From Mobula hypostoma (Eukaryota), in contig NC_086109.1 of the NCBI RefSeq assembly GCF_963921235.1, forward strand, positions 12,152,001 through 12,216,000: a stretch of DNA of 64,000 nucleotides, in the 5' to 3' direction. Shown here piece after piece: positions 14,493-64,000 of this stretch. Position 1 is the first letter of the stretch, and every line of letters starts with the position of its first letter. The notes under the pieces were generated by a model that was not told the origin of the DNA, made no database searches, and saw nothing but the letters and a program-made list of their open reading frames with translations. The position numbers and the translations under genes are program-made.

Positions 14493-14583
14493 TTACACGA
14501 TATGGAAAGTGGGACGCTGGCTGTTCTTTGCTTTGCAGGGGATCTGCACTATCGCTGTCACATGGTTCAGGAGAGACAGAAAG
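14493..14583 (+). CDS. Activating-type transmembrane exon of a CD300/pIgR-like (MDIR-like) receptor paralog
   Basis: Acceptor CCCCTTTGTTCAG and donor AAG|GTAAGC; phase 2 to 0; encodes YTIWKVGRWLFFALQGICTIAVTWFRRDRK. Same entry phase as the TM exon at 40292. Confidence 0.75.
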
Positions 14584-14599
14584 GTAAGCCTAGGTCAGT

Positions 14600-15270
14600 A
14601 ACAAACAAAAGAAAATCTGCAGGTACTGGAAATCCAAGCAGCACACACAAACTGCTGGATGAACTCAGCAGGCCAGGCAGCATCTATGGAAGTGAGTACA
14701 TTTAAAACTTCAGGCCGAGACCCTCAGCAGGAGAGGAGAAAAATACACGAGGAGTAGAGTTAAAGGGTGGGGGGAGGGGAGGGAGAAACACAAGGAAACA
14801 CACACACAATGCCGGAGGAACTCAGCAGAGCAGGCCACATCGATGGAAAAAAGTACAGTGATGTTTCGGGCCGAGACCCTTCAAAGTCCTAGCCTGCTGA
14901 TCTCCTCCAGCATTTTATGTGTGTTGCTGGGATTTCCAGCATCTGCAGATACTCTCTTGTTTGAGAAACACAAGGTGATAGGAGAAACTGGGAAAGGAGA
15001 GGTGAAGGAAAGAGCTGGGAGGTTGATTAGTGAAAGATTCAGGTCTGGAGAATGGGGAATCTCCAGCACTGTATCTCTTTCACCAATCAACTTCCCACCC
15101 TTTTTCACATATCACCTGGTGTTTCTCCCTCCCTTCCCCAAACTTTTAATTTTACTCCTCATCTGTTCTTCTCCAGTCTTGGTGAAGGGTCTCAGCCCGA
15201 ACCTTCGACTGTACTCTTTCCCATAGATGCTGCCTAGCCTGCTGAGTTCTTCCAGCATTTTGTGTGTGTA
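14600..15270. mobile_element. Penelope-like terminal repeats in mixed orientation
   Basis: Several copies of CAGCAGGCCAGGCAGCATCT / GGCCGAGACCC on both strands, with purine- or pyrimidine-rich spacer. Confidence 0.75.
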
Positions 15271-15344
15271 GCCTCGGTCAGTAGATGCTTCCGAATGGCT
15301 TCTATGAATCAGAACATCAAACATCCAACTGTACAGCACCGTAC

Positions 15345-15965
15345 CTGTCCTTTGGCCCATGATATTGTGCTGACCTCTTAACCCACTCTAAGATCAATCT
15401 TAAATGCCGAGAATATATCTGCTTTCACCACCCCCCCCGCCAATAGTAGGTAGCATGCACCCACAGCTCTCTGTGTAAAAAACTTACCTCTGACATTCCC
15501 TCCATCCATTTCTGCAACCACCTTAAATTATGACCCTTCATATTAGACATTTCTGCCCCTCAAAAATGTCTCAGGTATAGGGAAACATAGAAAAACTACA
15601 ACACAATACAGGCCCTTCGGCCCACAATGCTGTGCCGAACATGTACTTACTTTAGAAATTACATAGGGATACCCATTGCCCTCTATTTTTCTAAGCTCCA
15701 TGAACTAATCCAAAAGTCTCTTAAAAGACCCTATCATATCCGCCTCCACCACTGTTGCCGGCAGCCCATTCCATGCACTCACCACTTCCTGCGTAAAAAA
15801 CGTAACCCTGACGTCTTCTCTGTACCTACATCCAAGCACCTTAAAACTGTGCCCTCTCATGTTAGCCATTTCAGCCCTGGGAAAAAGCCTCTGACTATCC
15901 ACACGATCAATGTCTCTTATCTTGTGCACTTCTATCAAGGTAAAGTACTTGCCATCCTCCTTCAC
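15345..15965 (-). mobile_element. CR1 LINE 3' ends (two)
   Basis: RGHSFKV...FFTQEVVSAWNGLP...GSFKRLLD C-terminal CR1 signature (15705..15965). Confidence 0.85.
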
Positions 15966-16332
15966 TCCAAATTCATTCCAATATGCTGGCTACTTAAAGG
16001 AAAAAAAAATCACAAATGAACTTTTAACCTTTTGTCCAACCATAGTTGCATGAAGATGATAGACTGCAAGTAGGTTTTCACACTTCCTCCATGTGTAGAA
16101 TGAATTCAAGTGCTCGAAAGAAAATATATTGGAAACTGTGTGCCAGACAGAACTCTGCTGCGAGATGCCTGCATGAAATGTAAATCAAAGTCAACATCCA
16201 CTTTATTGCCCAATGCACAAGTACGTGTATACATCAGTGCATAGAGTTCAACATCACAGGTGTATAGACTCATACAGTATTGCATGGTTCCCTGTGTCAA
16301 TCAATCTGATAATTTCACTTTTGCCTTTACAG

Positions 16333-16386
16333 AGACGTGATCAATCAGATCCTCACAGTTTGGTCCATGAGATAAAAAGAGAATGA
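16333..16386 (+). CDS. Candidate short cytoplasmic terminal exon for the activating-type paralog
   Basis: Strong acceptor TTCACTTTTGCCTTTACAG; phase 0 gives RRDQSDPHSLVHEIKRE*, with no tyrosine motif. Confidence 0.4.
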   Translation, partial: RRDQSDPHSLVHEIKRE

Positions 16387-17379
16387 ACCCAGATTACACC
16401 GACCTTGGGGGAGATTTGCACCAAGATTAGGTGTCATTGTTCATCATCCTTTGTAGAACTTTCATACAGAATTAATATCTTGTCATTAAAACATTGACTT
16501 AATGAAATTGATATCAAACAAAATAATCTTGTCAAACTTCAAGATACTGGCTTTGTTTAATAGAAATCCACTTGCAACCCTTCACCCACACTGATCTTAA
16601 TATTATGACATCTTCTCTCGTTACCTTGCATAAACCCAGCATCAATTTTTAACCTTTTTATAATCATGAACTGCTCAAAATTCTTTTACCATGTTGTCAT
16701 CTCTTTTCGGGCTCCCGTTCAGGTACTGGAATTGATTCTAACCAACGTCTCTGAAGAAGATGACAGATTTTGTCATCAAAGCGTTGGTTATAATCAATAC
16801 GTGTGCCCGCTTGAAGCCCGATTAAAGTTTATTTGTCATATACACCAGGAAAACAGTAGATCCTTTTTCATGTTAAAATCTGTTCAGTTAGATTCAAATT
16901 ATTATCTTCACAGTTGGTTATTTCAATAAACAATTATAAACATATTAATGAAAGTTCTTCTTCATAAAGTTCAGTTTTCAATGAAAAATTCATCCATTCA
17001 TTCTGTTTAGAATATTACTTTATTCATCGGTTCATGGCCTTCGATTCTCCTTAAGGTGTCAATAGCTGGAAATTTTTTGGAGAAGGAATCAAATAATCTC
17101 CAGATCAAGACATCCCAATGGAATGATTTTATTGAAAAATGTTGGCCCAAATTATTAGCTTTGTTATTCTCCTTGTACTGGCTGACCTGTTGAGTATTTC
17201 TATCAATTACGGAATTCATTTCAGATAGATACATATTTTTCCTTTTGTATTCAGGAATATTATTACTTAGAGAAATACCTCAATGTTATTCACTTTGAGC
17301 ACATTTGCTGTCACTGTACAAAGGACACTGACCAATGGAAAGTAATATCAGGTACTGAATAATATCAAATGGACAACAA

Positions 17380-20215: not shown

Positions 20216-20359
20216 AATGGCTGCAAAAACATTATTCCAGTTGTTGACCAATGTTCTGAGCTCAACTGGTTTTCCTACCATGGTCATCATCAGACTCATG
20301 AAAAATTCTGATGTCCTTCAGACTCATGAAAAAGATTAGGTTTCATAAGAAGTAGATTA

Positions 20360-23590: not shown

Positions 23591-24665
23591 TTCAACATCA
23601 GAGTTGTAAATGTTTTACAATCCCACCACTGTATTTAAAAGTGTGCATAAGACTGTGATTAGGTTTAAACACAATTGTAAAATAGCCAAATTGTTATTAT
23701 TGGTCAGTGATCTAGTTGCTCAAACAAAATGCTTTGCTGAAGATGTTTTGTATCCCTGCTTTGTTCTCATCAGCATATTGAACCATGGCTGTTGAGACGT
23801 TTTCCAAGAAGTGATGGGGCAATATCAGAAGAGACCAGAACAAGCTGTCAGTGTGTAGCAAACATTGACACTTCTCTATATTCTATCGGGTAAGACAAAC
23901 AAAGAAGAGAGAAGTTCTGACCACATCCTTCACTGAGGGTGAACATTACACAGATGTCAACAGTGACTGATGTAATGGAGTCAGCACGTATACTGTACAA
24001 CGTACAGACTGTCAGCACACATACTGTACAATGTACATTCTTGGATCACCTTAACCCTCGACTATGATAAAACCAAAAGCAACAACACAAAATGCTGGAG
24101 GAATTCAGAAGGCCTGGCAGAATCTATGGAAGTGAATAGATGTACTGCATGGTTACTTTGCATGAAAAGCCCTTCTGCATGATAGCTATTTCCTACTTTG
24201 CTCCTTTCTCAGCAGCAAGTTCCCCAGAACATGTTTGCTTGAATTATCTCCAAGGCAGATCCAGAATGAGGTCCAAATCATGGAGTGTAAGTCCATCACT
24301 CCCCTGACTGATTTATGTTCTCCCTCAACCCCATTCTCCTGTCTTCAGGAGTCAGGCGGGATCTGCAGAGACAGAGTGGTCAACATTTCAGATTAATCAG
24401 GACACCTCCAGCTGTTTATTTTTACTTCAGATTTGCACGTTTATTGTTGCTTGTGTCCAATATTTTAACACTTTTCACCATTTCATTTAGTCTTTGGGAA
24501 TTGTTTAAATGTTTCTGTCTTGCTAAATATAACTAAAAGCCTTTCAGATGGTCACGTACCACACACCACTTGGGTCACTTGTTTTTTGCTGCCTTCTTCC
24601 TCATTTTAATTTTAGTCATTGATTTCTGAGAACAGACAGGTCCTGGCTGGGTCTCTGTCAATAAA

Positions 24666-24705
24666 ATGTTATGGACATTGATTGTTCTGATTGGTGTCCT
24701 GACCT
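24666..24705 (+). pseudogene. Orphan signal-peptide (leader) exon of a receptor paralog
   Basis: ATG TTA TGG...ACC T|GTGAGT encodes MLWTLIVLIGVLT, phase 1; flanks align with the leader at 29709. Confidence 0.7.
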
Positions 24706-25859
24706 GTGAGTGACAAACAACACTGGACTTCTGTGTAAGCAGTGTTGGTTTGGGGTCATGCATAGTTTACAGAGCAGTGCTTGAGTAAGTGTAGGCAGTG
24801 AAGATGTCGGAATCTGGATTTTAGAGCAAACTTCCGGAGGAAGTCAATGTGCCAAGAAATGTCTGTCAGTGGGGAGGGACTTGACTAAGCTTTGGGTCAA
24901 GAATGTGCATGAAGTCAGAGTGGAGAGTGAGAGAGTGTAAATAGGAGAAAGAGAGGTCTGAGACTGAATTCTCTTGGTGGTTGGAATCTGAGGATGGGTG
25001 AAGCATGGCAAGTAAATGGAATGGGGAGGAAAAGTGTTGGAGCTTGGAGCTTGGTGACTGGTGGAAGAAGACAACACGAAAAGGGTAATAGACTGAAGTC
25101 AGCTGGGGCGGGGGGTGCAGAGAATATGTCCAGCTGGAGAAATCTCCTGGAGGCTGTTAAGCAGAAACATCAGGTCTCCCATTGCTGGAATCTGATCTCA
25201 CACTGCAGGCATCACTGTGATATTCGATGTTATTGTCTTGAAATCAGTGTCTTTCCTGGGCTATTTCAGTGGGCAATTAGGAAACAATATTATAAGATCT
25301 GGAGTCGAAGGTAAACCTTGGTGGGTAGGGATGAGAGATTTCTGTCTCATCCATGTTTCCTCTGTGAAAGGTCCATGCATTCGATGCCCCGGGGAGTGAT
25401 GACCTGCTTGTCTCAGGGTTAAGTTTGTTGAATGCAGAAATGCCCATCTCGTTGATATGCCTGAAGAACATCAAACTCCTTCTCCTCTTACTCAGCCTGA
25501 GTGTGGATTACCAGAAATTTTTCCAAATTCAGTGCCAAATGCATTGGCAAGTCAGTGAAACCAGTCACAATTTCATTTCCTCCTGAAAGCCACCAAACAG
25601 GTGATGGATATCTCACAGGTTTCGGCCTTTAAAAACTCAGTGGCCACTTCATTAGGTTTCAGGTCAGTAACCCTGCTCAGATCTGGGTTAAAAGTGGAAG
25701 CGTGTCAGTTTACAAAGCAGATCTGGTGGGAGGGGTGATGTGCAGGATGATAGACCATGCAGTTCACTCCCGGGTTATGAATTCCTGACCGACGGACACT
25801 TCTACCTATGAACGAGCTTCTGTAATGTTTCTTAAAAACTCCAGTGTATAGATTTAGGC

Positions 25860-26916: not shown

Positions 26917-27088
26917 GCAACACACATCAAAGCCGCTGGTGAACGCAGCAGGCCAGGCAGCATCTCTAGGAAGAGGTGCAGTCGATGTTTCGGGCCGAGA
27001 CCCTTCGTCAGGACTGAGCCTGCTGCGTTCAGCAGCAACTTTAATGTGTGTTTCTTGAATTTCCAGCATCTGCAGAATTCCTGTTGTT
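26917..27088. mobile_element. Inverted-structure Penelope-like tail insertion with 14-bp TSD
   Basis: TTCATTTTATACAT at 26903..26916 and 27089..27102; minus-strand hammerhead motif at 26979..27016. Confidence 0.85.
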
Positions 27089-27775
27089 TTCATTTTATAC
27101 ATAGTTATTCCTTTCAGCGTAGTGTTGCCTTCATTTCCTTTTGAGAGTTTTAGTTAACAGCCCTGTTTGGCTTAGCATTTATTGTTTTATTCCTCTATCA
27201 CTGTTCTCATAAAAAGCACTGTGAATTATCTACCCACTTCACTGTCTCTCACTCCTCACATGGGCCATATCTGAACATGGTGACACCAGTGATCTCTCAA
27301 TGTGTAGCATCTATTGGTACTTCTCTATATTCTGTTTGGTAAGACAAGTAAAGACAGAAGTTCTAACCACATCCTTTGCTAGGGGGAACATTATGCAATG
27401 GCAGCAGTGACTGATGAAATAGAGTCAGCACTCATAGTAACAATGTACAGAATTTAAGCAGATACACATTCCAGGCTAATATACTGTACAGTTTACGTCT
27501 CAAACAAACCCAAAGTAACAAAAGCTCTCCGTGTATACAGAATTCTTTTATCATTTATCTACTTATCAATGCGAAATTAAGTATTTATAAACAATTGCAA
27601 AGTCAGTAAGTAAATTCAGGAAAATATATAAATCAGCCACATTCTTGCATCACCATGACCCTCACACTACAATGAAATCAAAAGCAACAGACACAAAATG
27701 CTGGAGAAACTCAGCAGCTCAAGCAGCATCAATGGAAATGAATAGATAGTCAGGGTTTCATACATCTGCAGCTAA

Positions 27776-28090: not shown

Positions 28091-29574
28091 ACATCTACAG
28101 CTAATTTTGCAGCATACTGTATGCCGGTGATATGAAACCTGATTTTGATCCTGATTCTGTATTACTTCTCCAATATGTGTGACTGGTGAGAATTGTTATC
28201 CCAGATACTGAAGCACTACTCAGACTTCAGCTGCCCCAGGGAATCGCATAGAATGAATCTGGATAGAGTAACATTGAGAGATCTAACAAGGTGAACAAAG
28301 ATGCTGGGAAGCTAGCTACTGAGAAGGTGAGCAAAGGTGTGCAGTTTCAGGTGTCAGGGAGACTATGGGAGTGAGATAGGAAAGATAGAAATGTTCTCTC
28401 CTTTGACAAGTGTGAACTGTCCATTTACAGTGCTCTATTATTCTGTGGGAAATGGAAACTACAGGGGTTGTCTACTCACACAGATCATTTACTGTCAAAT
28501 GGAGTTGATTTGCTTTAAGAATGGATCTGATGTGGAAATCTAACTGAAGCAAAGTGAAATCCCATCAGAGGTCTTGAAATTGCACTGACAGATGGAATAG
28601 AATTGAGAAGAGATGAGCTTTCAAGGCTCAAAAAGAAGAAAGAATGAAGCCAAGTATGTAATCAGAGTTTGCAGGAAAAGCACCTTCTACATCTCACTTA
28701 TTTCCCACTTTGCTCCCTCCTCAGTAGCAAGTTCCCAAAAATTATGGCAACACAGGGAAAAAGCTGGTGGAACTCAGACGACCAGGCAGAGTCTGTAGAA
28801 AAGAGTAAACAATCAACCTTTCAGGCTGAGGCGCTTCATCAGAACTCATGTCATTTCTTCCTCATGTGTTGTGTTTGATTGAATTACCATCAGGGCAGGT
28901 CCAGAAAGATGTACAAATCTTGGAGTGCAAGTCCATAACTCCCCGAGATTTGGAACAGAGGGAGATGGTAAAGTAGTTGTTAAGGAAGGCTTCCGGCATT
29001 GAACGAGCAATGAGCTTTCAAGAATTCATGCTGCAGAAGAGATTCACCAGACTGGTGCCTGTATTAGAAGCCCATAAGCCCCAAAGGCATTGGAGCAGAA
29101 TTTGACCTTCTCAACCCCATTCTCCTGCCTTACCCTGTAACCTTTGATGCATTTACAAATCAAGAACCTATCAACATCATGTACTCTGAGGCTATGCCAT
29201 CTGTTTGTAGACTCACTTACTGCAGGAAATGTTCTCTCCACGTCCACTCACACAAGGCCCTTCAATATTCAATAGGTTTCTATGAGATTCCGTCTCTTTC
29301 TTCTAAACTCCAGTGAGTATTTTAAGTCAAGCAAAAAATAAAACTTCTGGGGGAGCTTTGGGAGTCATGTGAGGTCTGAGAAGGCAGAGTGGTCAATATT
29401 TCAGATTAATCCCCTGTTTCAGGACACCTCCAGCCATTTATTGTTCATTCAGATTAGAACCTCTACTGTTGCTTGTGTCCAATACTTCAACTCTTCTCAA
29501 CATTTCATTCAGTCTTTCAGAATTGTATAAGTACTTCTCTCTTGCTAAACATACCGAAATGCTTTTCAGTTTGT

Positions 29575-29645
29575 CACGTACCACACACCATCTGTGTCAC
29601 CCTTGGTTTTTTGATCCAACTTCCTGCTGCCTTCTTCCTCATTTT
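29575..29645 (+). promoter_or_regulatory. Putative haematopoietic proximal promoter motifs (RUNX, ETS/PU.1-like)
   Basis: ACCACA 29580..29585, ACTTCCTG 29619..29626, TTCCTCATT 29635..29643, all within 130 bp of the ATG. Confidence 0.35.
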
Positions 29646-29708
29646 TATTTCACAATTACTTCTCTCTGAGGACAGACAGGTCCTGGCTGCGTCTCTGTGA
29701 ATAAAACA

Positions 29709-29745
29709 ATGTGGGCTTCAATTCTCCTGATTGTTTCCCTACCTG
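29709..29745 (+). CDS. Exon 1: leader MWASILLIVSLP
   Basis: ATG...CCT G|GTAAGT, phase 1. Confidence 0.8.
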
Positions 29746-32700
29746 GTAAGTGACAAATTGTGCTGGACATTTGCATAAGCAGTGTTGGTTTGGGGGTCAT
29801 ACACCATTCGCGGAACAGTACTTGAATATCTGTAGACACTAAAGATATCAGAAATTGGAGTTCAGAGTGCACTTCTGGGGGAACTCAGCGGGTCAAGCAG
29901 CTTCTTTTAGGGGAGGGGAATCAGCTACAGTTTGGTCTGTGACACTCAAGTGTAAGTGGAGAGGAAGATGGTCGAAATAGGAGAGGGGGAGGTGTGAGAC
30001 TGGGTCTACTAGGTCGTCGGGGACTTAGGAGGGTTGAAGCACAACAGGCAAATGGAAAGGGAAGGAAAAGGGGTGGACTTTGGAGATTGGTGAGAGGTGG
30101 AAGCAGACAAGAAGAAAAGGGGAATAGTGTGGAGTCAGGTGAGGGAAGAATATGTCCAGCTGATGGAATCTAGAGGCTGTTAAACGGGAATATCATGTCA
30201 ACTGGAATCTGATCTCACTCTGTTGGGATCACTATGAAAATTGATGTTATTCTCCTGTTAGCAGTGTCTTTCCTAGGCCATTTTAGTGGGGCATTTAGTA
30301 AAGAACATTTCTAGATGTGCAGTCAAAGATAACCTGGGTGGGGAGGGATGAGAGATTTCTGTCACTAAAGGCCTTTCTGATCCAGATGGGATTTTGACAG
30401 TCTGGTAGTTGATCATTATCATTATGGATATGTGGTTTTTAATTCCAGAAATTAGATATAAACACTTAATAAATCCCTAAAGGAAATGAAATCACACCTG
30501 GATTTCTGGACACCAAAGTGGTAATGACCACTGTTGCAGCACCTTCTAACTACACAGAGAAATACCTGACAGGTACAAAATATAAAATTTCCATCAGAAC
30601 CAGAGGGCTCAGTTTTCAGACAACATGAGGGGTTTCTTTCTGCAGTTTATAAACTTGTCTGTAAGTGCGGAGGAAGTCAGGACATTGTCATCATGGAGAG
30701 AATTGAAACATGATCTCAAATGATCCTACTAACCCCTGACTCAACCCTGGAACACAAGAAACATATGCACACAAATCTCCATGTACAGTAGCTCTATCTA
30801 TCCCAAATAAATTACCTGGGATCTTTGTGGACACTTGGAGGTCCAGCATGATCTGTTGTAATTTATAATTTAATATTGCTGCTCTCCCTCAGTACCAGAC
30901 TCGAAGATCAGCCCTGGGTTTCTGCTCAGGACTCTGGAGTGGGAAGTGAACCCACAATGTACTGACACAGGGGAGAGAGCACTGACACAGCTGACACAGT
31001 AACAGCACTGACTGCACCTCAGACCAAAATCATTGGCTGTGGTGTCATGGGAAATATTAAGTTGTTCCTTTCCTCTGAAATCTGAAAATGCCTCCTTCAG
31101 TTTCAGGTGCATTTTGGGCAGAGAAATATGTAAAAGGAGTTGTGGGAAGAGCGATCACAATCGATTGTCACTATGAAGCAAAGTACTGCTCACACACAAA
31201 GTATTGGTGCCATGGATGGACTCGCCAATGTTCAGTTTTAGTGGAAACAAATGGGCAACACAGACGGCGTGGACGAGTGTCAATCACAGATAACTCAGAA
31301 CGGAGAACATTTACTGTTACTATGAAGAATCTTCGCTCTGGAGATACAGGATGGTACAGCTGTGGAATTTCAACAACTTTTAATGACCCGATGTTTAACG
31401 TACATTTACAAGTATCTGATGGTAGGTTTCTCAGTTATTGATTTTGTGCCTTCAGTAAAATAAATGTGTCATCCCTGTTTCCTCTGGGACGGGTAAGAGC
31501 ATTAGATGTCCTGGGGAGTGACGATGTGCTGATCCCAGGGTGAAGCTTGTTGAATGGAGAAATGCCCATCTCGTGGATGTGTCTGAAGAACAACAATCTC
31601 CTCCTCCTCCTGCTCAGCCTCTGCACAGATTACAAGATCTTTGTCCAGACCCTGTCCATCCCTCAAAATCTCTGCATTAATATCAGTGTCAAAATCTGGC
31701 AACAAACGGGTGAAAATGGAGGGCTAAAATACACTGAGAATAAACAGAGAGGCAGATGATAGGTGGAACACAATGAGACAGAAGTGGCAGCAAAACAGGT
31801 AATAATGAGAAACAGGTCTAAGACAGAGTACTCAGTAATACAGGGGCCAGAGTAGAGCAGGAGCAGGGACAGGAGCATATGGGCATGAACACAAACAAGA
31901 GCACATGGCAATACAAAACCACAGACTGACAGCTAGTGACAAAACACATAAAGAGGCAAAGTTCAACTGGAGGTACTGACAGACATAGTCATACTCATAG
32001 TCATACTTGATTAATCCGGGGGAAAATTGTTTTCGTTACAGTTGCTTCATAAATAATAAATAGTAATGCAACCATAAATAGTTAAATAGAAATATGTAAA
32101 TTATGCCAGTAAATTATGAAATAAGTCCAGGACCAGCCTATTGGCTCAGGGTGTCTGACCCTCCAAGGGAGGAGTTGTAAAGTTTGATGGCCACAGGCAG
32201 GAATGACTTCCTATGATGCTCTGTGTTGCATCTCGGAGGAATGAGTCTCTGGCTGAATGTACTCCTGTGCCCACCCAGTACATTATGTAGTGGATTGGAG
32301 ACATTGACCAAGATGGCATGCAACTTAGACAGCATCTTCTTTTCAGACACCACCGTGAGAGAGTCCAGTTCCATCCCCACAACATCACTGGCCTTACGAA
32401 TGAGTTTGTTGATTCTGTTGGTGTCTGCCACCCTCAGCCTGCTGCCCCAGCACATAACAGCAAACATGATAGCACTGGCCACCACAGACTCGTAGAACAA
32501 ACTCAGCATCGTCCGGCAGATGTTAAAAGACCTCAGTCTCCTCAGGAAATAGAGACAGCTCTGACCCTTCTTGTAGACAGCCTCAGTGTTCTTTGACCAG
32601 TCCAGTTTATTGTCAATTTGTATCCCCAGGTATTTGTAATCCTCCACCATGTCCAAACTGACCCCCTGGATGGAAACAGGGGTCACCGGTACCTTAGCTC

Positions 32701-35700
32701 TCCTCAGGTCTACCACCAGCTCCTTAGTCTTTTTCACATTAAGCTGCAGATAATTCTGCTCACACCATGTGACAAAGTTTCCTACCGTAGCCCTGTACTC
32801 AGCCTCATCTCCCTTGCTGATGCATCCAGCCATGACAGAGTCATCCCAAAACTTCTGAAGATGACAAGACTCTGTGCAGTAGTTGAAGTCCGAGGTGTAA
32901 ATGGTGAAGAGAAAGGGAGACAAGACAGTCCCCTGTGGAGCCCCAGTGCTGCTGATCACTCTGTCGGACACACCGTGTCTCAAGCACACGTACTGTGGTC
33001 TGCCAGTCAGGTAATCAAGAATCCATGATACCAGGGAAGCATCCACCTGCATCTCTGTCAGCTTCTCCCCCAGCAGAGCAGGGCGGATGGTGTTGAACGC
33101 ACTGGAGAAGTCAAAAAACATGACCCTCGCAGTGCTCGCTGGCTTGTCCAGGTGGGAGTAGACACGGTTCAGCAGGAAGACGATGGCATCATCAACTCCT
33201 AGTCGAGGCTGGTAGGTGAACTGCAGGGGATCTAAGTGTGGCCTGAGCATAGGCCAGAGCAGCTCCAGAACAAGTCTCTCCAGGGTCTTCATGATGTGGG
33301 AGGTCAATGCCACGGGTCTGTTGCCATTGAGGCCGCTGGGGCACGGCATCTTCGGCACAGGGACAAGGCACGACGTCTTCCACAATACAGGAACCCTCCG
33401 GAGCCTCAGGCTCAGGTTGAATACATGGCGAAGTACTCCACATAGCTGAGGGGCACAGGCTTTGAGCACCCTGGTACTGACACCTGTAGAGCTGTGAAGC
33501 CCACCGTGGTGGTTTCGTGTGGGGAAGGGGTATAGTCATGAGAGCAGGGTGGGCGACTGTGAGGAGGGGTAGGAGGGGAGAGTGGAATATGTGTTGGTTG
33601 GGGGCCAACAACAGATGTCTCCTGTGCGGGATGGACAGGGGCAACACTGTCAAATCTGTTAAAGAACAGGTTAAGTTCATTGGCCCTGTCCACACTGCCT
33701 TCCTCTCCTCTGTTGCTAGTTTGCCAGAACCCAGTGATAGTCCTCATCCCCCTCCAGACCTCTTTCATGTTGTCCTGCTGGAGTTTCCACTCAAGCTTCC
33801 TCCTGTACCTGTGTTTAGCCTCCCTGATCCTGGCTTTCAGGTTCCTCTGTATTGCCCTCAGCTCCTCCCTACTTCCATCTCTAAACACCCTCTTTTTAGC
33901 GTTCAGGATGTCCTTAGTGCCCTTTATCACCCATGGCTTGTTATTTTAATAACAAGGGACAGTTCTTGTCAGAACATTGCCGTCCACACATCTCTCATTG
34001 ACAAGGCATTTTGCTCACATAATAGCTGATCACTGGATATTTCTTGTTTTTTCACACCATTCTCTGTAAACTCTAGTGACTGTTGTGCATGAAGATCTCA
34101 GGACATCAACAGTTAACAGTTTTTAAGACACTCAAACCTCCCCTTCTGGCACCAACTATCACCCAATGGTCAAAATCACTAAGATCACATTTCCTCCCCA
34201 TTCTGATGTTTGGCCTGAACAACAACTGAACCTCTTGATTATGTCTGCATGCTTTTATGGACAGTGTTGCTGCCAGATAATAGATTAATTAGATATTTGC
34301 ATTAACAAGTAGGTGAACAGGTGTACCTAATAAAGTGACAGAAGAGAGTTTGATTTCATTCAGTGTCTGATTGCTGAATTGTTTTCCACAGAACCCGTGT
34401 CTGCTCCTGTGGTTCGATATCCATCACCAGCAAATGTTTCACGTCTCAGGGGCTTAGTGTTACTTTCCTGTGAGTCTCTCCAGGGATCCTTTCCCATTCA
34501 GTACAAATGGTATGAACAATCTGGACATACACAGATCTCAGATACAAATGAACTGGCTCTCTGTTGTAAATCCTTCAGCCTCCAGCACCAACGATATTAC
34601 TGCAGTGCCTCAAATTGGTATGGAGCAAGATCCAGTGCAGTGGTTAATTTGACAGTCTTCAGCAAAGGAGAGACCTGCAGTTATATGACAGAAATCAACG
34701 GCAACAGTAAGTTCTAATTTCAAGGGGGTATACATTTCAATATTTATTGCTGTTATGGTGTACTGCTGCTCTTATACCTCTAGTGAGGGTAAGGAATTTC
34801 TTTGCATTTGTAGAAGCCACAAATTGCAGCCACCATGGGGTAGAAATAAAGTGTAGTGAACAGTTAAGTCTGTCACTTCCTCCTGGAAGATGCGCAGCAT
34901 CTCAAACATAGTTGGACTTGCACATCCAGACAAATTGAGAGCATTTCATTCATACTTCTCGCTTCAGCTTTGAAAAAGCTAGAAGAGGTGTTGATTTGTG
35001 AGACATTGACACTGTCATAAAAACAAAAGGAAAATATATTAAATATCAGTGGGAATGACAGAAATTCGGCAATGTCAGGGGGCAGAAGTGAGTGTGGTTA
35101 CTTTTACTAAGGAGAAGGTGCTCGAGGTGGTCGATAAGTCACCTGGATCAGATGGACTACACCCATGTTTCTGAAAGAGGTAAGTGAAGAGATTGTGCAG
35201 GCATTAGCGGTTATCTTTGAAAAATAACCAGACTCTGGAAATGCCACTCCACACTTTAAGAAGGGAGGGAGGCAAAGGAAGGGAAATTGTAGACAACACT
35301 CCAGAGTAGATGAGGAAAAGATGTTTCCCATGATGGGACAGTCTAGGACAAGAGGGCACAGCCTCAGGATAGAGGAGTGCCCTTTCAAAACAGAGATGTG
35401 GAGAAATTTCTTTATCCAAAGGGTGGTATACTTGTTGAATTGGTTGCCACATGCAGCTTTGGAGGCCAGGTCATTGGATGTATTTAAGGCAGAGATTGAT
35501 AGGTTCTTGATTGGACATGTCATCAAAGGTTACGGGGAGAAGGCTGGGAACTGGGGTTGAGGAGGAGATTGAAAAAAAGGATCAGCCATGATTGAATGGT
35601 GGAGGAGACCAATGAGCCAGATGGCCTAATTCTGTTCCTTTGTCTTATGGTCTTATATTGTGACATATACAGTATGTTCTTTAATAATAAATTTAATTTT

Positions 35701-44700: not shown

Positions 44701-45421
44701 AAACATCTAGGACCAGTTTAGTGTGTTGCTGTTGTAAAGCAACATGCTGTTGTTGTACATTTAGTAGCGGGTCCTCACTAGTGATCACTGTCACTCAGTC
44801 ATAAACTGTTATCAAACATTCTGAAAAATTATATTCTACAAGCTGAATGACGGGATTAGGGTTTATTAAAAAGCAGAAAACTGAGGGTGATCTGGTAGAT
44901 GTCTGCAAAAGTATCCAATTGTTTTATAGAGTAGTGAACATGTTTCTACTTACAGATGAGAGCAGAAGTCAAGCTATAAACATAAGATAAATAATTTAAA
45001 AAATCCACGGACAAGACCATAGACCATAAGGTATAGGAGCAGAATTAGGCCATTTGGCCCATCAAGACTGCTCTGCACTTCAATCATGACTGATTTATAT
45101 TCCTTCTCACCCTATTATCCTGCCTTGTCCCAGTTACCTTTCACACCCTCACCTTCCACATTCATCAGACATAAAATAGATAATGGAATTTCTTTATCAT
45201 TTCAGGAAACGGCCACGTTGGGAGAAAACATCGTTTATGCAGATCTACACCATGTTCGAAACAATGAGGCAGCTGCCCAATCAGCTAACAACGAAAATGA
45301 AACTGTGTATGCAAACATGAAATGTAAAAAGAAGTCACGAGCAGGACACTCTGTTATGGATGAGGACAACACCACCTATGCAGGTGTCAAATTTCAAAGC
45401 CAACCCACAAGGCCCAAATAG
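29709..45421 (+). CDS. Inhibitory CD300/pIgR-like (MDIR-like) receptor gene, 7 exons, ~366 aa
   Basis: join(29709..29745,31101..31421,34392..34706,39523..39595,40292..40383,43283..43329,45206..45421) = 1101 nt. All introns GT-AG, phases 1,1,1,2,1,0, no internal stop. Confidence 0.85.
31101..31421 (+). CDS. Exon 2: V-type Ig domain, CD300/pIgR signature
   Basis: ITIDC...KYWCHGWTRQC (extra Cys pair)...DTGWYSC; donor G|GTAGGT; alternative acceptor at 31107. Confidence 0.92.
31985..34010 (-). mobile_element. Rex1/Babar-type LINE, 5'-truncated, in intron 2
   Basis: RT ORF 32138..33469 preceded by a frameshifted piece 33412..33930; CATAGT/CATACT tail at ~31985..32006. Confidence 0.85.
32138..33469 (-). 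CDS. Reverse transcriptase ORF of the Rex1/Babar LINE (443 aa)
   Basis: RPVALTSHIMKTLER, LDPLQF, MFFDFSSAFNTI, GAPQGTVLSPFLF; catalytic motif reads FWDD. Confidence 0.85.
   Translation of the reverse strand: MLKACAPQLCGVLRHVFNLSLRLRRVPVLWKTSCLVPVPKMPCPSGLNGNRPVALTSHIMKTLERLVLELLWPMLRPHLDPLQFTYQPRLGVDDAIVFLLNRVYSHLDKPASTARVMFFDFSSAFNTIRPALLGEKLTEMQVDASLVSWILDYLTGRPQYVCLRHGVSDRVISSTGAPQGTVLSPFLFTIYTSDFNYCTESCHLQKFWDDSVMAGCISKGDEAEYRATVGNFVTWCEQNYLQLNVKKTKELVVDLRRAKVPVTPVSIQGVSLDMVEDYKYLGIQIDNKLDWSKNTEAVYKKGQSCLYFLRRLRSFNICRTMLSLFYESVVASAIMFAVMCWGSRLRVADTNRINKLIRKASDVVGMELDSLTVVSEKKMLSKLHAILVNVSNPLHNVLGGHRSTFSQRLIPPRCNTEHHRKSFLPVAIKLYNSSLGGSDTLSQ
34165..34340 (-). mobile_element. Tc1-like non-autonomous element end
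   Basis: Reverse complement of the CACTTTATTAGGTACACC...AATGCAAATATCTAAT terminus also seen at ~45512 and 62829. Confidence 0.6.
34392..34706 (+). CDS. Exon 3: C2-type Ig domain
   Basis: LLSCESLQGSFPIQYKWY...RYYCSASN; acceptor TTTTCCACAG, donor A|GTAAGT; phase 1-1. Confidence 0.9.
35060..35645 (+). mobile_element. Internally deleted CR1
   Basis: RGHSLRIEECPFKTEMWRNFF...SLDVFKAEIDRFL and typical CR1 3' UTR. Confidence 0.8.
36349..36470 (+). mobile_element. 5'-truncated tRNA-derived SINE
   Basis: B box GAGTTCGAATCC within GAGCACACTGGACTCTGAAGCG...; no 3' tRNA acceptor stem. Confidence 0.6.
39523..39595 (+). CDS. Exon 4: Thr/Asn-rich stalk
   Basis: TTTTACTTTCTTTCAACAG acceptor; PIHFCENTVNETTTAQTKESTNK; AT|GTAAAG; phase 1 to 2. 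Confidence 0.8.
40292..40383 (+). CDS. Exon 5: uncharged transmembrane segment
   Basis: SIYTTVLSVIGILLILLVICLLCYLKRKNR; phase 2 to 1; donor G|GTAGGT. Confidence 0.88.
40908..41200 (+). mobile_element. V-SINE/HE1-like SINE
   Basis: tRNA-like head plus GGGTGCTCCAATTTCCTCTCACAGTCCAAAGAC core and AAATAAATAAAT tail. Related copies at ~39160..39390 (+), 42920..43230 (+), 43780..44030 (+), 47600..47770 (-). Confidence 0.7.
43283..43329 (+). CDS. Exon 6: proximal cytoplasmic exon
   Basis: TGTATTTTCCAG acceptor; (E)SKYNTSHGGGKNETQ; CAG|GTATGG; phase 1 to 0 bridges exons 5 and 7. Confidence 0.75.
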
Positions 45422-46366: not shown

Positions 46367-46603
46367 TTTGGGGTTCAGTTCAGGGCTAACAACTGTGACA
46401 GGTAAAACAACTCTGTTGTGGAAACAGCAATGAAGAATCATTCTACATCTGAGTGCGATGGTATTCCTGAGTCTCAACCCAGGATTTGCATGACTAACAG
46501 TTGTGAAAACTGAGAGGAAGCTACTGACGTGATGAAAGAGGCACCGAACACCACCAGAGATGGAGGACCCTCATTGCTGCCCCAGACGCCAGTGGCGTAG
46601 CAG
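46367..46603 (+). repeat. 237-bp direct repeat (partner 62445..62681)
   Basis: 7 mismatches in 237 bp, no indels. Confidence 0.95.
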
Positions 46604-47999: not shown

Positions 48000-49534
48000 T
48001 GTCATAAGGGAGGGCGCTGAGAGCGGACCCAAAAGCAAGACACAGACACTGAAGTACTATGAACAGGATGAGGTTTATCGAGGTAACAAGGTGAGTAAGG
48101 AAGAAACAATGCTGGACATTGACACAGGCCCTGGACGAGACTAGGATTCAGGGCCTGGGCTAGGACTTGGACTAGAAACACGGGACCCAGATGGGAACGA
48201 GGAATGAGGAGCCTGGACTAGGAACATGGAACTCCGTAACCAGAGCCTGGACAAGGACCCGGAACCTGGGTCTTGGCTGGGGCTCGGAACCTGGGTCTTG
48301 ACTCAGAACTGGAACCCTGGTCTAGGTTAGGACTCAGAACTAGGATCTTGGCAAGGACAGGACATGGCTCAGGACAGGATGAAGTACCACAGCACAGGAT
48401 GAGAAATCCCCAGCACTGGGCTGGGTGAGGAACTCCTGGGCTGGGTGAGGAACCGGAACTAGATGAGGATATGAAGTTGAGATTTGGACAGAGCTGGAAC
48501 ATGATGCCGGGACTTGGTCTTGGAACACAAGAACTCAGAGCCTTGGACGTGGACTGGATGCTCAGAGCCTTGGATGTGGATTGGACACTCAGAGCCTTGG
48601 ACATGAACTGGACGAGGTACACCAGGGCAGGACGTGGTTCTAGGACTAGGTTTGGCTTGGTCCTTGGACTTGGCTTGGTTAGGATCCTAGGTATGGAGCT
48701 GGAGCTCCTCCTTGGAGCGCGGGGCTGGGACCCTTTCTTGGACGCAGGGCCGGGATGACTACCGAGGACACTTGCCAAGGTAAACTGCTGAGGGATTCCT
48801 GGACTGGACGAGAACATGAAGCAAACAACAGGAATTCTGCAGATGCTGGAAATTCAAGCAACACACATCAAAGTTGCTGGTGAACGCAGCAGGCCAGGCA
48901 GCATCTGTAGGAAGAGGTACAGTCGACGTTTCAGGCCGAGACCCTTCATCCTGACAAAGGGTCTCAGCCTGAAACGTCGACTGTACCTCTTCCTACAGAT
49001 GCTGCCTGGCCTGCTGCGTTCACCAGCAACTCTGATGTGTGTTGTGCGAACATGAAGCCTTGTCTTGGACAGGACTGGATCACGGCACCTGGAACTTGGA
49101 TCACAGGAATACAGAACACGGAGCCGGAACCCCTCTTTGGGAACAGAGCTTAGGGCCAGGGCTTTACACAGAGTCAGGACCTCTTCTTGGGAACAGGACC
49201 TAGGGCCGGGACTTGTTTTTGACATGAACCCGGAACACAGGGACACAAAGAGATAGTTCCAATCTCAATGATAGATAGTTCCTGAACTTGGCGTGGCAAG
49301 GCTCCGGTCTCACTCCGGCAGTTGAACTTGACGGGGCTTCAGGCAGAAGGGGGAGGGAACAGTTCGGCAGGGAATCCTTGGTTTGAGAGGTATTTATGTG
49401 CCAGCCCAAAATGAGAATCAGGTGCCTCAATTAAGGTGTCCAATGGAACAAGGGAAAACAAGAAAACCTGGAATAAGGAATGAACAGACCGGACCATGAA
49501 CTGGAATGCAGAAATAACGGACCGGACCATGACA
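48000..49534 (+). mobile_element. Solo-LTR-like element with internal tandem repeats
   Basis: TGTCAT...ATGACA termini; TSD TCATG/TCAGG; 27-bp CTCAGAGCCTTGGA repeats; contains a Penelope insertion. Confidence 0.8.
48823..49047. mobile_element. Palindromic Penelope-like tail insertion with 11-bp TSD
   Basis: GAACATGAAGC at 48812..48822 and 49048..49058; two ~90-bp arms in inverted orientation. Confidence 0.85.
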
Positions 49535-52456: not shown

Positions 52457-52459
52457 ATA

Positions 52460-53830: not shown

Positions 53831-53903
53831 CAAGACTATCTTCTTTTTACTGTACTTCAGTAGATATAATAATTCTATTTGCTAATTTACTGGTTCACAA
53901 GGC

Positions 53904-55352
53904 TGTCACAAAGGTGGGGGCTTTAGGAGCAAGGGTGGACCGAAATGCAAGACACATCTTGTGAGGTTAATTAAATTTAGTTTATCGTTTGATATCAGGA
54001 GAGCTAGACAGGAGCAGGAGTAGCGAACTGGACAAGGACTGAGGACTACGACTAGGCTGGGACCAAGGGTCTAGGCGAGGACTCGGAATCGGCTCCCAGA
54101 CTAGGGGAGACATGAAGAGGCTAGGGTATGGACTCCGAGCCCGAGACTGGGCAAGGACCCAGTACCTGGGTCTTGCCTCGGGCTCGGACGCCAGAACCAG
54201 GCATGGACACGACATGGGCTAAGGAGAGAAGGAACATGGAAACACAGAGCCTCGGTCTCGGGGAGCAGGTACATGGAACCATGGACACATACAAAGAAAA
54301 CAGAGTCGGGACCCCTCCTTGGGTACAGGACATAGGGCCGGGACTCACACACAGAACAGAGAGCCGGGACCCCTCCTTGGGTACAGGACATAGGGCCAGG
54401 ACTCGCACACAGATCAGAGAGCCGGGACCCTTCCTTGGGTACAGGACATAGGGCCAAGACTCATGACCCTTCGCGGGGCAACGGCAAGACGGCCTGACTT
54501 ACCCCACGGAGGCAAGGACAGGACAAAACAAGACATGACTCCCCGTGGGGCAACGGCAAGACAGCCAGACTTACCCCAGGGAGGCAAGGACCAGACAAGA
54601 CAAGACATGACTCCCCGCGGGGCAACGGCAAGACAGCCAGACTCACCCCCACGGAGGCGAGGACCAGACAAGACAAGACATGACCCCCCGTGGGGCAACG
54701 GCAAGATGGCCTGACTTACCCCATGGAGGCGAGGAAAAGACAAGACAAGACCAACACGAATGAACACCAGACAGTACCTATCTAGCTCTGGCAATGGAAC
54801 TAGACCGAAGTGCAGGCAGGGGCTGCAGACGAGGGCTAGAGGCAAGAGGGGCAGAGAAGGGATTCAGACAAGGGGGTAGGCCAGGAATCACAGACCGCCA
54901 GGGCCAGGGCTTGACTCAGAACCGGGAAGCCGCCCAGAGCCAGGACTTGACATGGAGCCTCCGGGTAGTGGCGAGCTCTCGACTCGGCCCGGGAACAGAT
55001 GACAGTGGTTCTTGATTCGCTCTGGCGGGTTAACTGACGGACCCACTTTGATGAGGAAACTTTGCAGGGTCATTTCAGCGAGGTAACTGGACTGGGTTGC
55101 TCCGGTGAGGAAGGGCGAATTACCGGCACTCGCTTCGGCAGAGACTAGGCTTGCTCCGGCCAGATAACATTGGCACACCGTGACTTTGCAGTCGCTCCCA
55201 CACCGAGCTGGAGACTACAAACTACCAGTTCAGCCAAGTGTTAATTGCCTCTAATCACCAAAGTCGAGGGACATGGGAAAACAGGGAATCAACAGTTCGG
55301 ATTGTAACATAAACAAGCTAAATTTAAAGGGACCCCGATCCGGACCATGACA
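53904..55352 (+). mobile_element. Solo-LTR-like element with ~60-bp tandem arrays
   Basis: TGTCACA...ATGACA termini; TSD AAGGC/AAGAC; arrays at ~54300..54450 and ~54460..54750. Confidence 0.8.
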
Positions 55353-55369
55353 AAGACATGATTGTGGTT

Positions 55370-56760: not shown

Positions 56761-56817
56761 ATACCTTACAATGAATAGAGGCTTAATTCACTTTTAGAGT
56801 CAGAGCCCCACAAATTA

Positions 56818-58754: not shown

Positions 58755-59179
58755 GAGGAACTCTGCTGGTTAGCGTTGACCATGAAGGTTATGTCCCAGC
58801 TGTCTACGTGATAAGCAAGCTAGTACAATATGAAAAGCAAACTGTTGCCCCTGTACCAGGCTCCCACTCTCCACGCGGCTGATGATTCCAAAGGAACGGC
58901 AGGGACAGATGCAGTTTGGCACCAGTGACATCACAGGAGTTGCCATTCAGCATTGAACTCGATGTAGGACTGGAATAGGGACTCCAGCTCCAGATACTCC
59001 CCAAGCCTTACAGATGAGCAGGTGTAGCTGCAGGGCAGCAGAGGTTTGAGCAGTGGAGTCTTCCAGAGGAAGTGATTGAGACAGGTACAAAAGTGCTATT
59101 TAAAAAACACTTGGATAGATACATGAAGGGGCAGAGCTCAGAGAGATGTGGGCTGAATGTAGGAAACCAGAATCAGAAT

Positions 59180-60000: not shown

Positions 60001-60479
60001 ACACCGAACATGTGAGATACGAAAGAACTTTATTCAGCACAGCAGATCGAGAGAATCGGTTTCTGCTCACTCCACACACAACAATACAGGGATGTTTTAT
60101 ACTTTGTAAATAAAAAGACAACAATCAGTGATTAAATGCATTCAAATAGTTATTGTTACTTAATCCTTAACTTTAACTGTTGAAAATAGACAGGCAACAT
60201 TTGAAGAATTGCATATTTACAGCGGGAGAACATGCCAAATGATCAGCACATCTGAATTTTAATATACTTGTGGCTGGTCCAGGAGTTTCTGACCATAAAC
60301 ACCCGGCAGCCAAAATATGTATCTTTTGTTGCAGAGTTGAGCGATGACCCCCAACTACACAAATACAAGTATATACCTTTAAAACTGTGTTAATACAGGA
60401 TATGGCCACTTAATGGCTCCTCTGATCTTATCCTGAAGGCTTCATTAAACACAAGATAACATCACCGTTCATCTATTGT

Positions 60480-60932
60480 CTCACCCTAGGGTGGTATAGA
60501 ATCAGATGAGGCCAACACCTTATATTCCATCTGGGTAGCCTCCAACCTAATGGCATGAAGATCGGTTTCTTCTTATGGTTAATAAAATTCACTCCCCCCC
60601 CTTCTTGTTCTATTCCCCACCCTGGCCCCTTACTTCTTCTGACCTGCCTATCACCTCTCTCTGGGTCCCCTCCCTCTTCCCTTTCTCCTATGGTCCACTC
60701 TCCTCTCCCATCAAATTCCTTCTTCTCCAGCTCCTTATTTTTCCAACCCATCTGGTTTCCACTCTCACCTTCCAGCTATCCCCTTTCCCTCCCTGCTCCT
60801 TGTTATTCTGGCTTCTTCTCCCTTCCTTTCCAGCCCTGATGAGGGGTCTCAGGCCCAAACATCGACTGTTCATTCACTCCCATGGATGCTGCCTGACCTG
60901 CTGAGTTCCTCCTCCATTTTGTGTGTGTTGCT
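60480..60932 (+). mobile_element. Penelope-like element 3' end (endonuclease C-terminus, pyrimidine-rich UTR, terminal repeat)
   Basis: HLIFHLGSLQPNGMKIGF motif, CT-rich tract, degenerate CTGATGAGGGGTCTCAGGCCC hammerhead repeat. Confidence 0.8.
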
Positions 60933-61049
60933 TTAGAATCAGAATATCCCACACTCATGATTGGTTTCAATAGCCTTAGACTATTAGCGGATTACATTGT
61001 ATTTCAGGAAGCCTTGTTCTCATTTTTAATTAATACCAATTATCCCTAT

Positions 61050-62030
61050 GATCTCATAGGTCCTGGAACATACATGGCAGTGAAGAAAATGATTGATAAA
61101 TGGAGAGCAGTTGATGTTGTAGACATGAACTTTTGTAAACCATTTGACATGGTCCCTCATATTATGCTGGTCCTGAAAATTAATTTACACAGGATCCATA
61201 GTGAGTTTGTAAGTTAGAAACAAAATTGGCATGTTGATAGACAACTGAGGCCAATGGCGGAGGAGTGATTATGTGACACGAGGCCCATGACCAGTGGAGC
61301 TCTGCAAGGTTCAGTGCCTGGACTTCGGTTAGTTGTAATAGATATAAATGATTTGCATAAAAATATAAGTACTTTTGTAGACAAAACAAAATTGTAGGAG
61401 CTGTGGATAGTGAGGAATGTGGTCAAAGGATACAGCAGGATATAGATTAGCTGGGTGTTTGGTCAGAGAAAGACAGGTAGACTTCAAATCACACAAGCAT
61501 GAGGTATTGCATTTTGGGAGGTCAAATGCGAGATAACATTATGTAGTTACTGGCAGGACAATTTGGAGCACTGATCCACAATGGGATCATGACATGCAAG
61601 TCCACAGCTCCTGAGAGTAACAGTGCAGGTGAATGGGACAGTAAAGGCAATGTATGGCATGCTTGCCAGCATTGAGTATGAAAGTTGGCAGTTATGTTGC
61701 AACTGTATAAAACTTTGGCAACATTTGGAGTAATTGTGTGTAGTTTTCATCTCTACTCTATAATGTGGAGGCTTCAGAGATGGTGCAGTAAAGGTTAACC
61801 ATGATTTGGATTGGATTAGAGTATAATAGCTATATGGAGACCTTGAACAAATTTGGAGTATCAGAGTATGAGGGTGACATATTGGAAGGGTATAAAATTA
61901 TGAAAAGCATAGACGGGGGAGTTATTCATAGTTCCCTGGGTAAAAGTATAAAAACCAAAGGACTTGCATCTAAGGTGATCAGGGGAAATACTTGAAGGAG
62001 ATTTAAGAGGCAATTTTTATACAGGAAGTG
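61050..62030 (+). mobile_element. Decayed CR1 RT
   Basis: RAVDVVDMNFCKPFDMVPH motif and downstream RT/3' signatures. Confidence 0.75.
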
Positions 62031-63689
62031 CATTATTATTATTACAAACTTTATTATTAGTTAAATCTGCTCACTGCTAAGTGTATTTTTCAATGTTGGT
62101 CTGGATGCAATCTCACCACAGCTCTATGTAGTTGGAACATGATAACCACTCTGTTAATATTTAAATATATGAAAGAAATTGTGATTGAGGAAGGGGTGGT
62201 GGGAGTGGAGTGTCAGGGTGGATATTGTACCCTGAGGGGAAAGAGCTTTTTGACATTTGCAGAGATGATCTAGCCTCCAAGAGGACCAAAAACTTGTTAT
62301 AGTTTGGAGGCTTGGGTGCCTCAGTGACCCAGAGAGCTATTTTGGCTGGCTTCAAGCATTATGCTTCAGTTCTTGGTCTGGTCACCTTGCCAAACAGGTT
62401 AAAGGGTAGAGGCCAGGCCAAGTGTGGTTCACAGATCCTCTAATTTTGGGGTTCAGTTCAGGGCTAAGAACTGTGACAGGTAAAACAACTCTGTTGTGGA
62501 AACAGCAGTGAAGAATCATTCTGCATCTGAGTGTGATGGTATTCCTGAGTCTCAACCCAGGATTTGCATGACTAACAGTTGTGAAAACTGAGAGGAAGCT
62601 ACTGACGTGATGAAGGAGGCACCGAACACCACCAGAGATGGAGGACCCTCATTGTTGCCCCAGACGCCAGTGGCGTAACAGAGATGATCTAGAGTCAGGC
62701 CCTCATTTCCAATTGGTCATACTTACTGATGAAGGGGAGCTGGAAAGTGGGGCGTATGGAAGAAACAGTTCAGAAAAAAAGCTTGACAAAGTAATTAAGT
62801 GGATTGATTAAGGCAGAAGAATTATGCTCAGTGGCCACTTTATTAGGTACACCTCAGCTCATAAATGCAAATAACCAATCAGCCGATCATATGGCAACAT
62901 CTCAATGCATAAAAACATGCAGATATGATTAAGAGGTTCAGTGTTGTTCAGACGAATTGAGAAGAAATGTGACATCAGTGATAAACCAAAAAAAATCTAG
63001 TGAACGTCAGTTCTGTGCGCGCAAATGCTTGATAATGAGAGATAATGTGCTGGTTTGACGCCACTCACTGGCAGAAAGCGGTATTGCAGTTAAAAGATTA
63101 TATCACCTTCCTGATTTTTCATTGGCTAAGTATCAGCCCATTACCCACGAGATGTAATTATTTTAATTATGTAGCCTATTAACTGATTTATTGCTGTGGA
63201 AGGAACTTTCCTAATCTTAACTTTAAAAGTAATATATTTTCAGATGTGCCATCTTTTTGTCTTCACATTCGCTGCTGTTCATTTACTTCTTAGGTCTTTA
63301 TTTAGCTTGCTTAGTATTTGTGTGCTTGTTTGTACTTTAAAATAAATGATCATTAGAATTAAGACTGTCCAACATTCCCGATTCCTGGAAGAACCGGAAG
63401 GATCAGTAAATAAATAAAGGCTCAATCGAGGACAATGGCCGGTTTGGTTCGAGCTGACAGAAAGGTGATAGTGACTCAAATAAACATACGTTACGACAGT
63501 GGTGTGCAGAAGAATACCTTTCAATGCACGACATGCCAACACGCATTGTTTTATGCATCAAGTTGCTGTCAGAAGAATGGCTGATTAGATATTTGCATTA
63601 ACAAACAGGTGTACAACTGTACTTAATAAAGTGGCCTCTGAGTGTAACTGTTTTGCCTTAAATCGATCCACATAATGACTTTACCAAGC

Positions 63690-63944
63690 TTATTCTGAAT
63701 CCTGGGGAGTGCCAGGAGAGAAAGCTTTCTGTCTGGGCTTTGCAGGTTGGCTTTGAAATTTGATATCTGCATAGGTGGTGTTGTCCTCATCCATAACAGA
63801 GTGTCCTGCTCGTGACTTCCTTTTAAATTTCATGCTTGCATACACAGTTTCATTTTCATTGTTAGCTGATTGGGCAGCTGCCTCATTGTTTCGAACATGG
63901 TGTAGATCTGCATAAACGATGTTTTCTCCCAACGTGGCCGTTTC
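63690..63944 (-). CDS. Terminal ITIM/ITSM exon of a convergent inhibitory paralog (rest lies beyond the window)
   Basis: Acceptor TTTATCATTTCAG; ETATLGENIVYADL...TVYASM...TTYADI...QKAFSPGTPQDSE*; ~94.5% identical to 45206..45460. Confidence 0.88.
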   Translation of the reverse strand, partial: ETATLGENIVYADLHHVRNNEAAAQSANNENETVYASMKFKRKSRAGHSVMDEDNTTYADIKFQSQPAKPRQKAFSPGTPQDSE

Positions 63945-64000
63945 CTGAAATGATAAAGAAATTCCATTATCTATTTTATTTCTGATGAATGTGGAAGGTG

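Follow-up and report, generated by a model that had tools for sequence, protein, structure and literature searches.

We analysed a 64,000-nucleotide stretch of the devil ray Mobula hypostoma (NC_086109.1, positions 12,152,001 to 12,216,000; hereafter the window, whose own numbering is used throughout), and found it very likely to be a slice of a large devil-ray cluster of MDIRs (modular domain immune-type receptors) that holds both inhibitory and activating-type modules. In all probability, this slice consists of an intact MDIR2-type inhibitory gene (gene 1), the terminal exon of an inhibitory paralogue in inverted orientation (gene 2), the 3' module of an MDIR5-type gene with an arginine in its transmembrane (TM) helix, and exon debris. 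Every element listed in a previous reading of this DNA, made from the letters alone (the sequence-only reading), was recovered at its given position or a few bases from it.

The exons of gene 1 (29709-45421, + strand) were resolved from two long open reading frames (ORFs) encoding immunoglobulin (Ig) domains, followed by tblastn of annotated relatives onto the window. The results revealed an intact gene of seven exons with an open frame of 366 amino acids and no frameshift or internal stop, in line with the sequence-only reading, which had placed here a full receptor gene with a V domain, a C2 domain, a stalk, a neutral TM helix and a tail bearing an immunoreceptor tyrosine-based inhibitory motif (ITIM) and an immunoreceptor tyrosine-based switch motif (ITSM). 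All junctions were AG/GT with a pyrimidine tract, and the phases (0, 1, 1, 1, 2, 1, 0) were mutually consistent. Exon 1 (29709-29745) carries the start codon and a signal-peptide leader and exits in phase 1, exon 2 (31101-31421, phase 1-1) encodes a CD300/pIgR-type V domain, and exon 3 (34392-34706, phase 1-1) encodes an FCRL-like C2/Ig_2 domain. These are followed by the stalk PIHFCENTVNETTTAQTKESTNK in exon 4 (39523-39595, phase 1 to 2), an uncharged TM helix with a KRKNR stop-transfer sequence in exon 5 (40292-40383, phase 2 to 1), the small cytoplasmic segment ESKYNTSHGGGKNETQ in exon 6 (43283-43329, phase 1 to 0), and the tail with IVYADL, TVYANM and TTYAGV, then a stop codon, in exon 7 (45206-45421), all on the + strand. 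For the V exon, 31101 is the most likely first position; this start yields LPVSG, like the homologues. Within the tail, IVYADL fits the ITIM consensus, TVYANM comes near it, and TTYAGV fits the ITSM consensus.

To place gene 1 among known receptors, we compared its domains with Pfam, solved structures (PDB) and annotated proteins. The V exon matched the Pfam V-set domain (E 2.3e-13), and its best solved relatives were pIgR D1, CD300LF (E 7e-19) and CD300A, with TREM2 and NKp44 more distant; the YWC...QC extra cysteine pair is kept. For the second Ig domain, the Pfam matches were Ig_2 and Ig_C17orf99, each with an E of about 1e-5 and slightly below the gathering score, and in the PDB it also matched the repeated domains of FCRL5. 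Over its full length and with the same architecture, gene 1 was 75-76% identical to two proteins of the stingray Hemitrygon akajei (P0187 and P0182). Its identity to clearnose-skate MDIR2 was 48% across 393 aligned positions (E 3e-124), and to skate MDIR5 it was 59% across V and C2.

We assign the family to the MDIRs, receptors in which an FCRL-type C2 domain accompanies a V domain of the CD300/pIgR type. Among the proteins retrieved by family queries were MDIR2 (E 7e-106) and MDIR5 (E 3e-83), and homologues showed V-C2 and V-C2-V-C2 arrays. Similarity to MDIRs, the V type, the combination with C2, and the presence of both ITIM-tailed members and short-tailed members with a charged TM helix were thus all observed, and the CD300/pIgR-like, MDIR-like family proposed in the sequence-only reading was confirmed by the V-domain matches, the FCRL-like C2 domain and the two skate proteins. 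MDIRs were reportedly first described in skates in 2006. One published account describes them as multigene families of skate and zebrafish with activating and inhibitory members, related to CD300, TREM, FCAR and pIgR (PMC3031540).

The second inhibitory gene is represented by its last exon (63690-63944, - strand), which carries IVYADL, TVYASM and TTYADI and shares 89% protein identity with the last exon of gene 1. The two exons lie within a 960-bp inverted duplication of 93.4% identity, which spans the last exon of gene 1 with its 3' flank and the 63690-63944 exon. The second ITIM exon had been noticed in the sequence-only reading and was recovered here. The remainder of gene 2 lies past the end of the window. 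At the distal end of each arm of this tail-to-tail duplication lies a copy of a 237-bp repeat (46367-46603 and 62445-62681); the two copies share 97% identity and orientation, and the repeat is probably a transposon that inserted recently.

The activating-type module consists of two exons on the + strand. The first, at 14493-14583, is a 91-nt TM exon of an MDIR5-type receptor encoding YTIWKVGRWLFFALQGICTIAVTWFRRDRK, with a pyrimidine-rich acceptor that ends in ttgttcag and with AAG|gtaagc as its donor. Its entry phase is 2, like that of the inhibitory TM exon (a match already pointed out in the sequence-only reading and upheld by the splice sites), and it exits in phase 0. The second, at 16333-16386, was absent from the list of that reading; it has the acceptor tttacag and encodes RRDQSDPHSLVHEIKRE followed by a stop codon, and its entry phase of 0 allows a clean join to the TM exon. 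Its 17 amino acids resemble the 15-16-residue tail exons of homologues, such as RHDQSDPHSLVHEIK, and AATAAA lies 99 nt 3' of its stop. We suspected a frameshift in this exon from the longer tail of Mobula birostris P0151, and rejected it, as most homologues stop where the window stops. Joined, the two exons encode 47 residues, with a 22-residue tail that lacks tyrosine and any tyrosine motif. Both a basic TM residue, in VGRWLFFALQGICTIAVTWF, and a short tail without a signalling motif are therefore present, as expected of an adaptor-coupled activating receptor.

To determine whether this TM exon belongs to the family, we fetched 150 family proteins with the V exon alone as query and compared the 30-residue TM exon with them by blastp. 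The results showed that 11 of these proteins matched the TM exon (E 1e-14 to 1e-5), with the arginine aligned in all 11. The matched proteins had been retrieved only via their V domain, and the agreement is far beyond chance. In most of the 11 proteins, the match was placed about 20 residues from the C-terminus, with no tyrosine motif after it. Identity of the TM exon to the TM segments of annotated ray proteins ranged from 67 to 83% (82% over 33 amino acids for Hemitrygon P0005), and the TM and terminal exons together were 87% identical to the C-terminus of Hypanus sabinus P0227 (45 aligned residues). The C-terminus of skate MDIR5, ...YISWKVGRWLLFLLLVIWSISTAVFTRGSKKRDESEPRHSAHELQ, shares the TM motif of the 14493 exon. 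In these similarity-based matches, the arginine and the tryptophan after it were constant and the lysine was variable. The sequence-only reading, which had singled out a TM exon carrying Lys/Arg, was thus right about a genuine family exon and its arginine, whereas the lysine is not conserved.

We then surveyed 242 fetched proteins with a regular expression, which presupposes the arginine and tryptophan and so is uninformative on their constancy. The Arg-TM type was found in 43 of the 242 proteins, and multi-ITIM tails in 51. No more than about 40 residues followed the TM helix in 36 of the 43 Arg-TM proteins, and neither an ITIM nor an immunoreceptor tyrosine-based activation motif (ITAM) occurred in any of these 36 tails.

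From this anatomy we infer splicing and expression of the window's receptor genes, a ligand for the receptors, and the way in which they would signal. In the inhibitory forms, phosphorylated ITIM and ITSM tyrosines would recruit SH2 phosphatases. In the activating-type form, the arginine near the outer end of the TM helix would pair with an acidic residue of an ITAM adaptor of the FcR-gamma or DAP12 kind; we propose this pairing on the ground that the tail, 22 residues long, lacks any signalling motif. An arginine near the outer helix end is the placement found in partners of FcR-gamma such as Fc-alpha-RI. One publication assigns a positively charged TM residue a role in the interaction with FcR-gamma or DAP12 (PMC4016189).

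Several observations on the Arg-TM exon and on gene 1 weigh against our main reading of the window. Searching 1-14492 by tblastn with the V, C2 and tail exons of the window and the 242 family proteins revealed no V, C2 or stalk exon in this interval, which is occupied by a long terminal repeat (LTR) element and pieces of long interspersed nuclear elements (LINEs). Compared with 40 homologous segments, the TM exon has three unique residues, T2, R26 and Q15; Q15 (14535-14537) lies in the helix core, where 38 of the 40 segments have leucine. These substitutions could reflect relaxed constraint. In gene 1, residue 41 is an extra V-domain cysteine (KYC versus KYR/KYH in relatives), which adjoins the YWC...QC pair and would be unpaired. 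In addition, it has TAG at 45419-45421, in place of the glutamine codon CAG found in gene 2 (63728-63726, - strand) and in the stingray homologues; this nonsense change trims 12 C-terminal residues relative to gene 2 and leaves the three tyrosine motifs in place. Since the 12 codons past the TAG remain conserved, the change 3' of the last tyrosine motif appears to be recent.

In the upstream interval, weak tblastn matches at 6815-7042 and 13082-13273 (E > 0.004) fell within transposon or non-coding sequence and are not credible Ig exons, and a 12-residue leader-like match at 13590-13625 (- strand, E 0.24) was taken as chance. Gln15 lies seven residues from the arginine, on the same face of the helix.

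The alternative that survives best is that the Arg-TM and tail exons are the orphan 3' remnant of a dead activating gene, so that the window would hold inhibitory genes and debris only; we consider it a real contender, somewhat short of an even chance. It draws on the lack of any Ig or stalk exon within 14.4 kb 5' of the Arg-TM exon, the retrotransposons found there instead, and the atypical TM residues, including the exchange of leucine for glutamine in the helix core. The other exon remnants of the window (a leader without V, a truncated C2 and a tail relic, described below) and our failure to find an annotated protein using the 14493 exon also favour it. However, neither exon has lost its open frame, its canonical splice sites or its phase match, the W-x-V-G-R-W motif is conserved, a poly-A signal lies close by, and the module is more similar to a stingray protein (87%, Hypanus) than the intact gene 1 is to its best stingray relative (75%). 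The missing Ig part either lies more than 14.4 kb upstream, past the start of the window and separated by an intron that the LTR element and LINE pieces have enlarged, or has been lost, because no V, C2 or stalk exon occurs over that distance. Family genes elsewhere span 14-23 kb, and a long intron before the Arg-TM exon is therefore possible. Furthermore, in the Hemitrygon model P0033, an Arg-TM-type exon, read in the wrong frame, is spliced in the model onto the leader exon belonging to the V gene that most resembles gene 1, a hint that the order of an Arg-TM exon near a gene-1-like V gene is conserved in that ray.

It is quite improbable that the Arg-TM forms are not activating, with the arginine serving assembly with a non-ITAM partner, retention or a decoy function. 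The closeness of the arginine to the membrane edge and the occurrence of the motif in proteins annotated as pIgR-like, one of them from sturgeon, would suit such a role. On the other hand, the absence of ITAM and ITIM from the 36 short tails argues against it, and a conserved basic TM residue, a motif-free short tail and ITIM-bearing paralogues together form the standard signature of adaptor-coupled paired receptors (PMC4016189; PMC3031540). We likewise give little credence to gene 1 being silent or decaying despite its open frame: it was not found among the annotated proteins searched, it has the unpaired cysteine and the stop that is premature relative to its paralogue, and a truncated C2 exon and a tail relic sit within its introns, but its 366 codons run uninterrupted over seven exons with perfect splice sites, and all domain hallmarks and the three tyrosine motifs are kept.

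Going beyond the reading of an inhibitory gene beside an activating-type module, the Arg-TM module might be part of an activating MDIR gene that is complete and expressed but unannotated in the devil ray, and the W-x-V-G-R-W helix might be an ancient adaptor-docking module, older than the divergence of cartilaginous from bony fishes. Skates, rays and sharks have the motif, as does a sturgeon pIgR-like protein; we regard the proposal as speculative and rather unlikely. If it is true, the copy-specific change from leucine to glutamine could alter adaptor pairing.

The window also contains the debris of gene turnover. An orphan leader exon (24666-24705, + strand, phase 1, donor GTGAGT) lies inside a segment at 24348-25498. 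The part at 24348-25346, with a promoter-like region and the intact leader, resembles the 5' region and leader of gene 1 at 29361-30363 (74% identity), and the part at 25343-25498 resembles the intron sequence right after the V exon of gene 1 (81%). As the leader part runs directly into homology to the post-V intron, the segment is what remains of the 5' end of a paralogue whose V exon has been deleted. The leader at 24666-24705 could serve as an alternative first exon for gene 1. The 3' fragment of a second C2 exon, its last 31 codons, lies at 36219-36311 (+ strand), without a usable acceptor and outside the open frame of gene 1, and is fused in frame to LINE endonuclease-like sequence (36100-36311; …ILDLVLGNKPGQVTDLSLGEHLG). 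We rejected this fragment as an exon of gene 1, because its sole phase-compatible AG lacks a pyrimidine tract and leaving it out reproduces the annotated Hemitrygon architecture. The Mobula birostris model P0008 includes a comparably truncated C2 piece with a different breakpoint. A decayed tail-exon relic, with its tyrosine replaced, lies in an intron of gene 1 (41820-41894, - strand). Together with the duplications, the leader-only remnant, the truncated C2 exon and the tail relic support the birth-and-death locus that the sequence-only reading had envisaged.

Apart from these exons, the vertebrate DNA of the window abounds in retrotransposons. One Ty3/gypsy LTR retrotransposon (1437-6722, - strand), with matches to rve, RNase H, RVT_1 and the Ty3 capsid and an LTR pair 91.5% identical, lies 5' of the Arg-TM exon, and LINE reverse-transcriptase pieces follow at 7221-10116. 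By domain matches, LINE reverse-transcriptase ORFs also lie within intron 2 of gene 1 (32138-33930, - strand). Copies of a short interspersed repeat were observed at 14642-15268 and 26920-27089, two of them in inverted orientation directly 3' of the Arg-TM exon, and the same element splits the gypsy reverse-transcriptase ORF near 4560-4630. GC-rich blocks at 48200-49250 and 54100-54850 contain internal tandem and palindromic repeats, with long spurious ORFs on both strands. Inhibitory-type and activating-type modules were both found among the retrotransposons, just as the sequence-only reading had pictured receptor parts embedded between transposons, and the cartilaginous-fish host it had named fits the close protein relatives of the window exons, all of which came from rays, skates and sharks.

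We also examined how such genes are represented in protein collections. Dozens of relatives are already present among RefSeq predictions, with names taken over from other families, and some of these models in other rays mishandle the Arg-TM exon: P0033 and P0049 read it in the wrong frame, and P0012 fuses neighbouring genes. No protein in the searched collections encodes gene 1 (best 75%) or uses the 14493 exon (best 82%), and word-index protein searches returned no protein marked as encoded by the window itself and no protein more than 82% identical to any window exon. The expectation that annotation could miss the activating member agrees with the result for the 14493 exon and is supported by the mishandled models in other rays.

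These results map, exon by exon, one inhibitory MDIR gene and one activating-type 3' module in a ray of the manta lineage, and they show the TM exon with the arginine to be a unit that is conserved and can be recognised throughout cartilaginous fishes. Given the mishandled automatic models, the map is useful for curating clusters of innate immune receptors in sharks and rays, and the conserved arginine offers a concrete mutation target when seeking the adaptor.

The locus belongs to a known kind of receptor and reveals no new type. pIgR gave the best solved-structure match to the V domain of gene 1, through its D1; along its chain, three to five distinct segments matched the V-exon query, corresponding to repeated V-like domains. 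It has a long transcytosis tail, and lacks the FCRL-type C2 domain, the ITIM tail and the Arg-TM short-tail form seen in the window; with one V domain, one C2 domain and an ITIM/ITSM tail, gene 1 is therefore not pIgR proper. Mammalian CD300 (CMRF35-like) proteins have a closely similar V domain and are likewise divided into ITIM forms and short-tailed forms with a charged TM helix. Their one V domain is not accompanied by a C2 domain, and in their activating forms the charged residue is lysine or glutamate in mid-helix, not arginine near the outer edge. CD300 proper is excluded for gene 1, since gene 1 has a second Ig domain, the FCRL-like C2. The nearest sequences are RefSeq models from stingrays and mantas (among them Hemitrygon P0187 and P0182, Hypanus P0227 and Mobula birostris P0151), with full-length identity to gene 1 of 75% and identity to the Arg-TM and tail exons of 76-87%, none being identical to the window exons; their names (polymeric immunoglobulin receptor-like, Fc receptor-like protein 5, CMRF35-like molecule) are automatic and derived from mammals. 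Among described receptors, the closest are clearnose skate MDIR2 and MDIR5 (UniRef entries P0238 and P0166), in which a V domain of the same type as in gene 1 precedes the same type of C2. MDIR5 has a W-K-V-G-R-W TM helix and a short tail with KRDESEP, as in the 14493 and 16333 exons; it differs in having four Ig domains, whereas the activating-type gene of the window is known here from its TM and tail exons alone. Clearnose skate MDIR2 has the same order of V, C2, stalk, uncharged TM helix and multi-tyrosine tail as gene 1, from which it differs as another gene copy in another species, with a longer tail.

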